Part shown: positions 20,254-24,550 of the stretch, one piece after another
Position numbering within the stretch: the first letter of the stretch is position 1
How the letters are laid out: the number at the start of each line of letters is the position of its first letter
Source of the DNA: Selaginella moellendorffii
Lineage: Eukaryota; Plantae; Lycopodiophyta
Assembly (NCBI RefSeq): GCF_000143415.4
Contig: NW_003314298.1
Span: 789,014-853,013 of the forward strand
Direction of reading: 5' to 3'
DNA: 64,000 nt
Translations under genes and position numbers: made by a program
The notes under the pieces: generated by a model
Told to the model about the DNA's origin: nothing
What the model saw: only the letters and a program-made list of their open reading frames with translations
Databases searched by the model: none

Positions 20254-21848
20254 CTAGAGTCCAGACGGTTGTTGTAGAGTTATACAGTGGATGTTCCCAC
20301 CGCCCAAAACGATCTCTCTCCCTCGCTTCACCATCACCACCTGGAAAAAACGAGAGATTTAAGCTGTACAGCTATGAAATGGAAAGTTCTACCTTACGGT
20401 TTGGAAAAGCTTCGCTCAAAACTTTGAAGGCTTGTTCGTCTCTGGCAGCGTCGCCGAAAGCCGGTGCCACAATGCCACCGTTTGCGATGTAGAAGTTCAC
20501 GTATGAAGCTGCGAGACGTTCTCCGGCTGGTCTTGACACAGCACTGAGCTCCTGAGATTGAGTTTCGCCAACAAAGTGGAAACAAAAGCCAAGCGAGCGA
20601 ACCGAACCTTGACACCAGCAGCTTCCTCCGGAGATCTGTAGAGCGGGCCTGGGATGTGGATCTTGACGACTTGCAGCGATCGGCCTCTAGCATCCTTGCA
20701 CGAGGTGAGCAAGTTGAAAGCTTCCAGAGATCGTTCGTACTGAGGATCAGCTTCGTCGTCCACCCAAGAGAGTAGGACCACGCCCGGCCTCACGAAGCAA
20801 CACATGTTGTCAACGTGGCCATTTGTGTCGTTGTCGCCTATACAAATCGACCAGCAGATCATTTGTTTTGTTTCAAGCTTGCTGTAGAAAAAAAAAAGAA
20901 AAAGACTCAAGTTTCATACCATGTAGTCCTCGTGGCAGCCAAATAACGGCCTCAACTCCCAAGTAGAGCTTCAGCTGTTCCTCAATCTCTTGCTTTGTCA
21001 TGCTCGCATTTCGGTTTGGGTTCAGCAGACATTCTTCCGTCGTCAAACAAGTCCCTTTGCACAAAAAAAACGAAATAAACACAGAAGAGTTGCGATTCTT
21101 TTCATACCTTCGCCGTCAACATGAATAGCACCCCCTTCCAGGACCATTGTGTGCGAGAATCGCGGCAAACGTGCAACTTCGAGGATCTAAACTGGTCATT
21201 TAGCTCGAGCTAGCCGGATATAAATGCAAATCGTTCTCACCTTTCTAGCAACGAGGCTGTCGAACTCCCAGTTCCTGTAACATCCAGCAGTAGCTCCTGG
21301 AAGAACAAATGAGCTTCTAACAACAGTTCCATCAACACTGACCTCCCCACGCATTAAAAGTCCAGTCGATTCCAGCAGTACCACCACCGGCGCCTGGCAA
21401 ACGTACTCTCTTCACTACAAACTACACGCAAAACGTCATCATCTTAAAGCAAGAATTTGCTTACGGTTGGTCCCGTGTCCCGGAACCACGAGTCGCTCAT
21501 GCTCATCTCGATCACACGGACACGCTTGGGCAGCTGGCTCCTCGCATTCTCCCACTGCAAATGGAAGAACAAGTAAGAACCGCTAAACAATCCAAGCCAA
21601 GCTCAACCTGAGCAGCGCTTGCGCACACAGTCACGTCCTCGAATTGAGAAATCGCGGTAGCGACCTCGACGAAAGCAGCTTGCGCGGGCTTCGCATCGTC
21701 TCTCCAATTGTCAGTGCGTTCCTAGAAAGAAAAAAAAATGAGAAAGAAGAAAGCAACAACACTAACTTACCGGCCAACCCATCCAGCAGCCAGAATGGCG
21801 CTCCCACTCCGCCGGCATGTAGTAGCCGAGATCCCGCGGCGTTGCCAT
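20254..21848 (-). CDS. AIH: Agmatine deiminase (agmatine iminohydrolase), multi-exon
   Basis: [69 protein letters not shown] (catalytic Cys). Confidence 0.96.
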
Positions 21849-21879
21849 TCTTTGTACCTCGAACCGGCCCTAATTTTTA

Positions 21880-24169
21880 CTAGGGTTCCCAGCGAACAGG
21901 CCCGCCACCTCCAAAGAATGGTCGCATGTAAGAATCATCGAAGCCTCTCCACAGGCTATGCACTGCCGAGGTTGGATTGGCGAGAAGCATGCTGAGGCTG
22001 CTCCGCCGGAGAAAGGTTGACGACCCATCTTCGTTTGCTTCTTCATCTTTCGGGGACGAAGGCTCCAGATGCCGTAAGTGGTGAGGGAGTAGTGTTGCAA
22101 TCAGCGGTTTTGTGACAACTCCCACCACCTTATAGAAAACGAAGTTAGCAAATCTTGTCAGTTTCAGGAAGAAAATTTTACGTACCAAGGTTGTGAAGAG
22201 TACTACTCCAGTTGTGCTATAGATCATGGTTGCATAGTCCGCGTTCATGGTTCCACTTGACGTTGAGAACTGAGAAACAAAGAAAATGGCGATGATCTTT
22301 TCTGATTAGATGCTTGTGTACCTGCTGGTACGCAAGGGCGATGGAGACTGCTCCCCGCATTATCCCGGACCACCAAATAATCACCTGTGAAAAACAAATC
22401 GTGGTGAAAAAACTGGCTCTGGTACTTTTTAAGCAGTAGTTTTCTTTCCCTTTGCTATCTCACTACGCTAGAATTACCTGGTGCCTAAAGCGCAGCTTCA
22501 CGCTTGATGAACCACGGGCATAGTTGGAGATGGCGGACATTGGAAAGACAAATGCCGCCCTCCCGAGAGGAGTTAGCGCCAGCAGCATAGCACAACTCAG
22601 TGATGCGGCTCTGCATTCATTCCAGATTCAAGTTGTATTAGTGATCAAGTTCAGAATGAAAGTACTCCCACTTGCCTGACATCGACAAGTTGCCATATGT
22701 TCACGTTGAAAACATTTGTCCCCACGTACAAGAACATGAAGCTTTCGGAAATGGAAGAAAAGGTAGCGAAAGCATGCCTGCTCCACCGGAGTTTTACGTC
22801 AGTGATAACAAGAGCTTACTTTACCATGGCTCTTACTTGGATGTGATTTTGGAACTGCCAGAAACATTGTGCCAGCCGTAGTGGGACATGAAAATGCCGC
22901 AAAAGAAAACCGAAAGTATCCCGCTCCATTGGAATAGCTGAAAATAAACAAATTATCGTTGAGGAAGAAACGATTATAGGCAAACCTCAGCCAACATATA
23001 AGACAGATACGCCATCAAAGCCATCAGTGCAATCTCTTTATCCGTGGAGTGCCTGCACTGTGTGAACTGTGACGTAAACACACGCGCCAAAACAACTGTA
23101 AGAACACGTACTTCCCGAAGTATAGACTCTTGAGAACATAAGCTGCGATCAGTCCAATCTAAGTTCATGAGAATTAGCCCAAGATTTAACAGAGAACTAA
23201 CGACTTACCACAACTCCAAGCACGGTGCTCACTGAGAAGAGGTAGACAAATTCATAGATCATTCTCAGCGCTGCTTTTCCATCCAATCCAGCCTCTTCAA
23301 ACCTCTGAACAGCTCGGAACAAAACAACAGCGGTTGCATCGTTAACCACCCCTTCCCCAAACACAAGACTGTAAAGTAGAGGAGTTTCGTCTTGGTGCAG
23401 CAACTGGCAGAGAAAGAAATCATGAAATTATAAACAAGCACGACGAGACAAAACCTGTAAAGTTGCCACGGTGTCTGTCGCCGAGAAGATTGTCCCAAGA
23501 GCTGCAAACACCCAACAGCGATTGGAAGACAATGACATTAGTCGATCGATTTAGCCTTGCTCACCCAAGTAATCTCTCATTTGCAGATTTCCAAGTTTTA
23601 GCCGCGGAAACATGTACTTGCATCCTGCAAAAATGCCAGTAGCGTGTTAAAGTTGAACAGCATCGCCATGGAAAAATCAAACCAGCTGTGACGATGGATG
23701 CCGAGATCAAGACACCGGATCCGCCAAAGAGCATGATCGTTCCAAAGTTGTGAAAGAATTGCTTCTTTTTCACTTGAAAGCTATGCCAAGAGAAAAAGAA
23801 AGATACGTGATCAAAGGGAGAGCCAGTTTACCCCGCATTGAAGATTATAGGAGGAAGAAGGTAGATGAAAAGCAATTGCTCGTGAGGATATAGATCACGA
23901 AGCCGACAGCACAACCCTGATAGAAAAAAGATCATGTAGAGAAAAAGTTTCTATCGAGAGATGGTTTCAATAAATCATACCAGGATAATCGCAATGGTCG
24001 CTTGATTCAGCCAGCGATTCTCCTCGTAGTAATGGCCGATGACAATGCACACGCACAGCAACGATACGAAGAGCGAGATCGAGATCACGGCCGCACGCTG
24101 AGATCCTGCCGCCGAAATCTCTGCCGCTTTTGCCACCAGGAATTCATACAGCCAGCCGACATTCTCCAT
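21880..24169 (-). pseudogene. NHX: Vacuolar-type Na+(K+)/H+ exchanger with a frameshifting deletion in exon 2 (null allele, pseudogene or assembly error)
   Basis: EENRWLN, FIYLLPPIIFNAG, FQVKKKQFF, GEGVVNDAT, WWSGIMRGAVS, WRGFDDSYMRPFFGG; exon 2 (23916-23832) is 85 nt, incompatible with phase 0 to phase 2. Confidence 0.8.
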
Positions 24170-24477
24170 ATCCAATCCCCGAGAAATCACAAACAATCGA
24201 GAGTGCCAGCAGAGGACGATTGGATAAGAATGCTGCGTCAAGATCCACAGATCACGCTCAAGCGATCGACATCCATCCAGATTTTACCTCTCCAGAAGCC
24301 GATCGATCAAAGATTGGCTCTCTTGGCGCTCCAGAGGACCAAAAGAAGGACCCAAAACCCCTAAAGAGTTTTAGCATGCATAGCTGGCGGGAAAGTCACA
24401 GCTGGCGTAAGTGACACCGTTGGAATTTGAAGGCCAAGATAAATTCTTCCAGAACAAAAGAACAAGAAATTTTTGTA

Positions 24478-24550
24478 TGAACCCGGTGTGACTCGAACAC
24501 ACAGCCTTCTGATCTGGAGTCAGACGCGCTAGCCATTGCGCCACGGATCC
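24478..24550 (-). tRNA. trnW-CCA: tRNA-Trp (CCA)
   Basis: GGATCCGTGGCGCAATGGCTAGCGCGTCTGACTCCAGATCAGAAGGCTGTGTGTTCGAGTCACACCGGGTTCA folds as a cloverleaf; anticodon CCA. Confidence 0.97.

Follow-up and report, generated by a model that had tools for sequence, protein, structure and literature searches.

In the CDC26-TTM3 pair the first open reading frame (ORF) is a small gene that resembles an upstream ORF. The pair is a land-plant instance of neighbouring ORFs carried on one bicistronic transcript and giving two proteins (PMC9768141, PMC11291117), and the locus described below differs from it in having a long membrane-protein gene in first position. Bicistronic mRNAs of green algae (Chlamydomonas, Auxenochlorella) combine very short inter-ORF distances with ORFs in different frames (PMC7896298, PMC11291117); the median spacings are 40–183 nt, and the first ORFs, with medians of approximately 300–360 nt, begin in weak start contexts and contain few AUGs (PMC11291117). 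In Arabidopsis, 271 read-through loci have been described, in which co-oriented neighbouring protein genes are arranged so that termination of the first lies close to initiation of the second (PMC9768141). Most second genes of these loci have start sites of their own, intergenic splicing accompanies many of the read-through RNAs, and the second ORFs are rarely translated, the RNA being a minor, decay-prone by-product (PMC9768141). Finally, dicistronic tRNA-mRNA transcripts, in which a tRNA and a co-oriented protein gene lie some hundreds of bases apart, are reported from vascular plants including Selaginella moellendorffii, for which a published screen gives 23 co-transcript tRNAs (PMC8166872).

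The locus studied here lies in a stretch of 64,000 nucleotides of S. moellendorffii DNA (the window, meaning the whole stretch that was analysed), in which a tRNA-Trp gene, an NHX gene and AIH, coding for agmatine iminohydrolase, follow one another on the minus strand (table 1). It shares with the Arabidopsis loci the land-plant setting and the co-oriented protein genes, and is set apart from them by a coding gap of just 31 nt, of a kind that looks frequent here. As discussed below, we favour, with a probability of roughly 0.7, the view that NHX and AIH are two separately expressed Pol II genes arranged head to tail, the genome being a very compact one.

Gene order, gene integrity and the second haplotype

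The NHX gene extends from an ATG at 24169 to a TAG stop at 21882-21880, and the AIH start codon is found at 21848-21846. An earlier note on this DNA had given the order tRNA-Trp, NHX, AIH and the 31-nt gap with exact coordinates, and both gene ends match homologues. The note had also treated the three genes as a chain; they are indeed co-oriented, but the chain was drawn too short, as it runs through tRNA, NHX, AIH, NAC, transposase-like and PPR genes.

Table 1. Features of the tRNA-Trp, NHX and AIH region, in positions of the window.
Feature	Positions	Strand	Basis or remark
tRNA-Trp, anticodon CCA	24478..24550	-	ARAGORN; Rfam RF00005, 64.7 bits
NHX, vacuolar-type (NHX1-4-like) Na+/H+ antiporter, frameshifted allele	21880..24169	-	tblastn, Pfam, exon map, splice sites
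NHX exon 2	23832..23916	-	exon lengths, three-frame translation; homologue alignment shows a frame switch
NHX intron 10 donor, GC-AG, GCAAGT	22670..22675	-	sole donor keeping the frame into exon 11
Duplicated piece, last NHX intron and exon	21970..22146	-	copy elsewhere in the genome
AGTAAA hexamer, candidate poly(A) signal overlapping the NHX stop	21876..21881	-	function inferred
Spacer between NHX and AIH	21849..21879	-	31 nt
AIH, agmatine deiminase, PAD_porph family, intact	20254..21848	-	Pfam, PDB matches, exon map

The AIH gene consists of 10 exons (1107 nt, 368 codons) separated by introns that are all of the GT-AG type. Matches to PF04371 fall on exons 1, 3, 8 and 9 (profile positions 1-17, 56-85, 172-253 and 253-298 of 321), the first exon aligns, from its residue 3 onward, with Arabidopsis AIH (AtAIH) from residue 7, exon 10 aligns with AtAIH residues 349-373, and comparison with the PDB returns the Arabidopsis and Medicago enzymes with E values of 1e-33 to 1e-34. 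Counterparts of AtAIH D94, H224 and C366, which we take to be the catalytic residues of that enzyme, are conserved in the alignments with 1VKP and 3H7C. The gene is complete and intact, as the earlier note had it.

The NHX gene is divided into 14 exons, which sum to 1520 nt in the window, by introns of 48-93 nt. Plant NHX proteins aligned by tblastn cover residues 5-520 of the 529-residue Arabidopsis NHX4-type protein, a PF00999 match is found on exon 6, and the alignment of the tail with plant NHX C-termini reaches to approximately 9-19 residues from their ends. The unusual GCAAGT donor of intron 10 is the same in the other haplotype. Pairwise alignment with the latter (GL377579.1) revealed that 28 nt are missing from exon 2 between positions 23884 and 23883, and the NHX frame is shifted in the window because of this deletion. 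Use of the canonical acceptor of exon 2 leads to a premature TAA at 23847-23845, and the uninterrupted PF00999 frame, typical of a class I vacuolar NHX, is absent from the window allele and present, with 524 aa, in the other haplotype. The window allele of NHX is thus probably null, with an intact AIH adjoining it. The deletion had been overlooked in the earlier note. The frame-restoring AG at 23952-23951 was considered as the acceptor of the main NHX splice form and rejected, because it leaves an intron of 30 nt, to be compared with the 43-93 nt of all 22 introns of the two genes. Being heterozygous, the deletion provides a natural test of any dependence of AIH expression on the NHX transcript.

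In GL377579.1, around 937,399-937,429, the same 31-nt gap separates what the annotation presents as two genes, with products of 524 aa (PF00999, NHX) and 368 aa (PF04371, AIH). The haplotypes show 10 synonymous and 5 non-synonymous differences in NHX and 13 and 7, respectively, in AIH, with no indels in the AIH exons, and both genes are shown to be under purifying selection. Exon differences that distinguish the two alleles number 16 for NHX, apart from the deletion, and 20 for AIH.

The tRNA-Trp gene, also found in the other haplotype, precedes the NHX ATG by 308 nt. The shared orientation, and a distance that falls among those recorded for tRNA-mRNA co-transcripts (PMC8166872), give some substance to the idea of one operon-like chain of tRNA-Trp, NHX and AIH opening with a dicistronic tRNA-mRNA transcript. 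However, a usual Pol III terminator, a TTTT run, is found approximately 21 nt past the 3′ end of the tRNA, and for S. moellendorffii the supplement of the published screen lists neither a tRNA-Trp nor any pair from GL377579 (PMC8166872). The locus therefore departs from the reported dicistronic cases in being unlisted and in having a normally terminated tRNA; tRNA-Trp is an ordinary, independent Pol III gene, and the operon-like chain is highly improbable.

Signals and reading frames at the joint

The reading frames of NHX and AIH differ. The NHX stop is doubled (TAG TAA), the second stop codon forming the 5′ end of the spacer, and a further TAG (21872-21870), in the AIH frame, is found inside the spacer 8 codons before the AIH ATG. 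No stretch is less conserved between the haplotypes than the spacer, which has 3 substitutions in 31 nt; its length is the same in both despite indels a few bases upstream. Folding of the RNA across the NHX/AIH joint gave a structure that is insignificant (z −1.33).

The AGTAAA hexamer at the NHX stop does not differ between the haplotypes and is the sole AATAAA-like hexamer (at most one mismatch) in the 600 nt scanned from position 21900, although a single hexamer could occur by chance, the expectation being approximately 0.14 such hexamers per 31-nt stretch. On the side of AIH, the 78 nt from 21927 to the ATG are free of AUG, and the start codon has a good context (A at −3, G at +4). The other haplotype has a 12-nt insertion that introduces an AUG, opening an 8-codon upstream ORF, approximately 48 nt before the AIH start. 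A recognisable core promoter motif for AIH was not found; a scan for promoters and terminators of the bacterial type, which is unsuited to a plant nuclear gene, also returned nothing.

Two further elements of the joint had been singled out previously. A telo-box-like AACCCTA is present, but it consists of the last NHX codons and the stop, reads AAGCCTA in the other haplotype and, as a 7-mer, shows no enrichment in the window (8 found, 4.5 expected). Enrichment in the window is seen for the full telo-box (6 found, 1.5 expected), of which the motif at the joint is an imperfect version. As for the AG at 21851-21850, proposed as an in-phase splice acceptor, its phase does suit the NHX exons that end on two codon bases (2, 7, 9 and 10), but it lacks a pyrimidine tract, and an A-to-G change at 21851 shifts it by one base in the other haplotype.

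This AG bears on the possibility that an NHX donor is joined to it, or to a later AIH acceptor, in a spliced chimera encoding an NHX-AIH fusion protein. Both its phase and the intergenic splicing seen with many Arabidopsis read-through RNAs (PMC9768141) would be in line with such a product. Its poor quality and lack of conservation as an acceptor, along with the different frames of the two genes, speak against the chimera that had been suggested, as do the match of both the NHX and the AIH ends with full-length homologues and the reference annotation, which has two genes and not a fusion. Furthermore, no protein of fusion size was found among the best 150 matches of NHX exon 6 in 1.84 billion representative proteins, the longest of them measuring 700 aa. 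A fusion protein is thus extremely unlikely.

Expression of the NHX-AIH pair

With NHX and AIH taken as separate units, the NHX mRNA would end in the 31-nt spacer, directly past it, or within the first part of AIH, and AGTAAA over the NHX stop would act as its poly(A) signal. The AIH mRNA would start from a core promoter of its own, situated either in the spacer or within the final ~80 nt of the NHX coding exon, and would have a short leader devoid of AUGs together with a good start context. With these positions the two units would abut, or would have some tens of bases in common. The hexamer at the NHX stop and the 78 AUG-free bases fit such abutting or overlapping transcription units, and it is from the sequence that we infer the independence of the two mRNAs. 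Of the three readings offered in the earlier note, the one that places the AIH promoter within the last part of NHX, with overlapping or abutting units, fits the sequence best. A point against separate units is the implied NHX 3′ untranslated region: at 15-35 nt, it would be unusually short by plant standards. Some read-through RNA containing both ORFs is likely to be made; by analogy with Arabidopsis, any such RNA would yield the NHX protein alone and be a target of nonsense-mediated decay.

If the genes are separately expressed, the core promoter of AIH and the termination signals of NHX would share a few tens of partly protein-coding bases, making the locus a compact land-plant example of dual-use sequence. 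It would also be a caution for annotation and expression studies in Selaginella, since a short read from around the joint is not assignable to one gene.

A functional bicistron would instead place both ORFs under the NHX promoter on one mature mRNA, from which AIH would be translated by re-initiation, shunting or internal entry. The 31-nt spacer, its length kept in both haplotypes, and the comparable spacing of the algal bicistrons (PMC11291117) are the observations that favour it. However, the NHX exons contain 36 AUG triplets over approximately 1.5 kb, as counted within exons and leaving aside triplets that span exon junctions, and the NHX start has G at both −3 and +4, as has the annotated NHX start of GL377579.1. 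Because of this long ORF, its 36 AUGs and its good start context, AIH is out of reach of leaky scanning, and the NHX ORF is shown to be unsuited to this mechanism. In this respect the locus differs from the algal bicistrons, whose short first ORFs have weak contexts and lack internal AUGs: a short inter-ORF distance is found here, while a short first ORF, a weak start context and AUG depletion are not, so that the bicistron put forward in the earlier note lacks, as a route to AIH protein, three of the four features of plant and algal bicistrons that were compared. Re-initiation is inefficient past long ORFs, and in Arabidopsis read-through RNAs it is rarely that second ORFs are translated (PMC9768141). 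The spacer is without significant structure and shows the lowest conservation, the stop is doubled and the frames differ; moreover, the premature stop of the window NHX allele would open a shared RNA to decay. Taken together, a functional bicistron is very unlikely.

More generally, NHX-AIH and many other pairs with near-zero spacers could be single primary transcripts, co-transcription being built into Selaginella gene expression; the source of the downstream protein would then be either the primary transcript or an RNA processed from it. If true, this would amount to polycistron-like nuclear gene expression in a vascular plant. Functional co-transcription would mean that polycistronic nuclear expression is shared by green algae and vascular plants, which is judged unlikely; built-in co-transcription is itself very improbable.

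A different kind of connection between the genes would be a selected regulatory coupling, with NHX transcription through the AIH promoter repressing or tuning AIH by transcriptional interference and thereby linking ion transport to putrescine synthesis. The geometry of the joint confines NHX termination and AIH initiation to the same few tens of bases, and the gap length is identical in the haplotypes in spite of the nearby indels; both observations speak for such a coupling. On the other hand, the spacer sequence is unconserved, and unrelated gene pairs that are equally tight are common in the genome, which suggests neutral compaction. Such a coupling is a doubtful proposition, and the idea that NHX and AIH are connected through stress functions is conjectural.

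Gene spacing and related sequences

The preferred reading of two closely packed, separate genes agrees with annotated gene spacing in this genome. Annotated gaps between 10 same-strand pairs at two loci (GL377648.1 and GL377579.1), a small sample, are −1, 10, 31, 131, 175, 209, 396, 1098, 2264 and 5993 nt; 3 of these 10 pairs have gaps of 31 nt or less, and tiny gaps are therefore common here. The suggestion that polycistronic organisation is a feature of this genome is sustained in so far as tiny spacers do recur (−1, 10 and 31 nt), but what they reflect is dense packing and not polycistrony.

With NHX exon 6 as query against the 1.84 billion representative proteins, most matches were fragments or proteins of angiosperms. 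The best full-length match, used in a word search, returned angiosperm NHX4 relatives alone and no Selaginella protein, and exact look-ups of six ORFs of the window or of the compared loci gave no match. The search with the ORF that includes the last NHX exon found no RNA-derived fragments, its sole match being a 177-nt genomic duplicate of the last NHX intron and exon. This copy, 96.6% identical over 177 nt, is on GL377648.1 (10445-10621 of locus L001), where it falls within the hypothetical gene SELMODRAFT_426440.

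NHX, AIH and their counterpart on the other haplotype

The upstream gene is a vacuolar-type Na+/H+ antiporter (NHX), with a Pfam PF00999 match on exon 6; plant NHX proteins align along the locus, and for an Arabidopsis NHX4-type protein of 529 residues the alignments span positions 5-520. The downstream gene is an agmatine iminohydrolase (agmatine deiminase, AIH); PF04371 matches were found on four of its exons, and the biggest exon matched the solved structures of the Medicago (E 3e-34) and Arabidopsis (E 2e-33) enzymes. AIH exons total 1107 nt (368 codons) and conserve the catalytic residues, those corresponding in alignments to D94, H224 and C366 in Arabidopsis AIH; the earlier note described AIH as looking complete and catalytically intact. 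Introns of both genes measure 43-93 nt throughout, and all splice pairs are GT-AG with the sole exception of NHX intron 10.

The GL377579.1 locus, reached via the neighbouring PPR gene, is 95-98% identical to the window across 20 kb, and is therefore the other haplotype. Its annotation lists, on one strand, tRNA, NHX (524 aa, PF00999), AIH (368 aa, PF04371), NAC, a transposase-like gene and a PPR gene, with NHX and AIH as two genes separated by the same 31 nt gap. The observation made in the earlier note is confirmed, with corrections.

Coordinates of the features in the window
Feature	Position	Strand	Remarks
tRNA-Trp(CCA) gene	24550-24478	minus	
NHX, 14 exons	ATG 24169, TAG stop 21882-21880	minus	start 308 nt beyond tRNA
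GC-AG intron 10 of NHX, donor GCAAGT	22670-22675	minus	identical in both haplotypes
Spacer, NHX stop to AIH ATG	21879-21849	minus	31 nt
AIH, 10 exons	ATG 21848, TAG stop 20256-20254	minus	
Full telo-box AAACCCTA sites	9574, 29994, 31950, 36813, 49941, 63182		

The joint between NHX and AIH

The 3' end of NHX and the 5' end of AIH are both real. The NHX tail (FDDSYMRPFFGG region) aligns with plant NHX proteins at their C-termini, and a second stop, TAA, directly follows the TAG. AIH exon 1 aligns, from its third residue onward, with Arabidopsis AIH from residue 7, and an in-frame TAG eight codons 5' of the ATG closes the AIH frame. A spliced chimera yielding an NHX-AIH fusion protein, one of the options initially considered, is unlikely, the two genes being in different frames and the NHX stop being doubled; the AG ahead of the AIH ATG, once proposed as an acceptor, lacks a pyrimidine tract and has moved by a single base on the other haplotype.

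Translation of AIH from an mRNA shared with NHX is also unlikely, given that the approximately 1.5 kb of NHX exons contain 36 AUG triplets behind a good start context, whereas in known algal bicistrons the first ORF is short, has a weak start context and contains few AUGs, and the second is reached by leaky scanning (PMC11291117). Read-through RNAs of Arabidopsis are degraded by nonsense-mediated decay and their second ORFs seldom translated; most of the second genes are served by start sites of their own (PMC9768141). The spacer itself has no significant RNA structure (z −1.33) and differs between haplotypes at 3/31 positions, more than the introns (2.2% and 5.4%). Among the matches to the ORF of the last NHX exon there were no transcript fragments, and exact look-ups of individual ORFs matched no records.

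The most likely reading, to which we assign a probability of about 0.7 from sequence features, is that NHX and AIH are two abutting or overlapping transcription units, in agreement with the option of an AIH promoter within the end of NHX. Several observations fit it. An AGTAAA hexamer overlaps the NHX stop in both haplotypes, and no other hexamer of this type occurs in the 600 nt scanned; as a candidate poly(A) signal, AGTAAA would direct cleavage within the spacer or shortly beyond. The 78 nt preceding the AIH start are AUG-free in the window allele, and the start codon is preceded by A at −3 and followed by G at +4. Synonymous differences between haplotypes exceed non-synonymous ones both in AIH (13 versus 7, with no indels in exons) and in NHX (10 versus 5). 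Finally, unrelated neighbours are often separated by very small gaps, judging from the annotated same-strand gaps of two loci, GL377579.1 and the separate scaffold GL377648.1 (−1, 10, 31, 131, 175, 209, 396, 1098, 2264 and 5993 nt). The value of −1 bears out the zero-spacer pair claimed nearby, since the transposase-like and PPR genes of the other haplotype (8304-11829 of that locus; window about 13808-16845) are annotated with one base in common (end 10001, start 10001). Selaginella genomes are compact, with 4.0 kb per gene and a gene-rich intergenic average of 1.1 kb in S. lepidophylla (PMC5750206).

On GL377648.1, the 16093-18819 region of the locus includes two minus-strand genes annotated 10 nt apart and a convergent pair with ends 31 nt apart. 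A 12-nt insertion in the NHX tail of the other haplotype introduces an AUG, and with it an upstream ORF of 8 codons ahead of AIH.

A frameshifted NHX allele

A 28-nt deletion in NHX exon 2 was overlooked in the earlier note. Exon 2 (23832-23916, minus strand) is 85 nt long in the window, which places all later NHX exons out of frame. The other haplotype carries 28 extra bases (1713-1740 of its locus; window gap between 23884 and 23883), which restore the frame in agreement with homologues. Because a five-base repeat flanks the missing stretch, the sequence suggests a real slippage deletion rather than an assembly error. Normal splicing would lead to a premature TAA at 23847-23845, so the window allele is probably a heterozygous loss-of-function (null) allele. 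This allele, a point added by the present analysis, offers a direct allele-specific test. An upstream AG (23952-23951) would lengthen exon 2 by 34 nt, restoring the frame exactly; it was rejected as the main splice form, since it leaves a 30-nt intron (23951-23980), far under the size range found here.

The other haplotype also has 11 extra bases ahead of the NHX ATG (window 24170), giving an earlier in-frame start (MG-), and two insertions in the tail that keep the frame, the one of 12 nt mentioned above and another of 9 nt (last exon, window 21892 and 22046, respectively). From the last NHX intron and exon, 177 nt (21970-22146) recur at 96.6% identity in GL377648.1 of S. moellendorffii (10445-10621 of the locus), contributing there to the hypothetical protein annotated as SELMODRAFT_426440.

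The tRNA-Trp gene and telo-boxes

The tRNA-Trp, previously counted as part of an operon-like chain, is an ordinary Pol III gene, closely followed by a T run; tRNA-Trp is absent from the S. moellendorffii entries of a published tRNA-mRNA co-transcript screen, which also include no pair on the GL377579 scaffold (PMC8166872).

The telo-box-like motif reported at the junction is present as a 7-mer within the last NHX codons; however, it is incomplete, not enriched in the window and altered in the other haplotype, and thus gives no telo-box support at the joint. The full telo-box is enriched (6 in the window versus 1.5 expected), and one copy lies 157 nt 5' of the start codon of a Myb-type ORF (299 aa).
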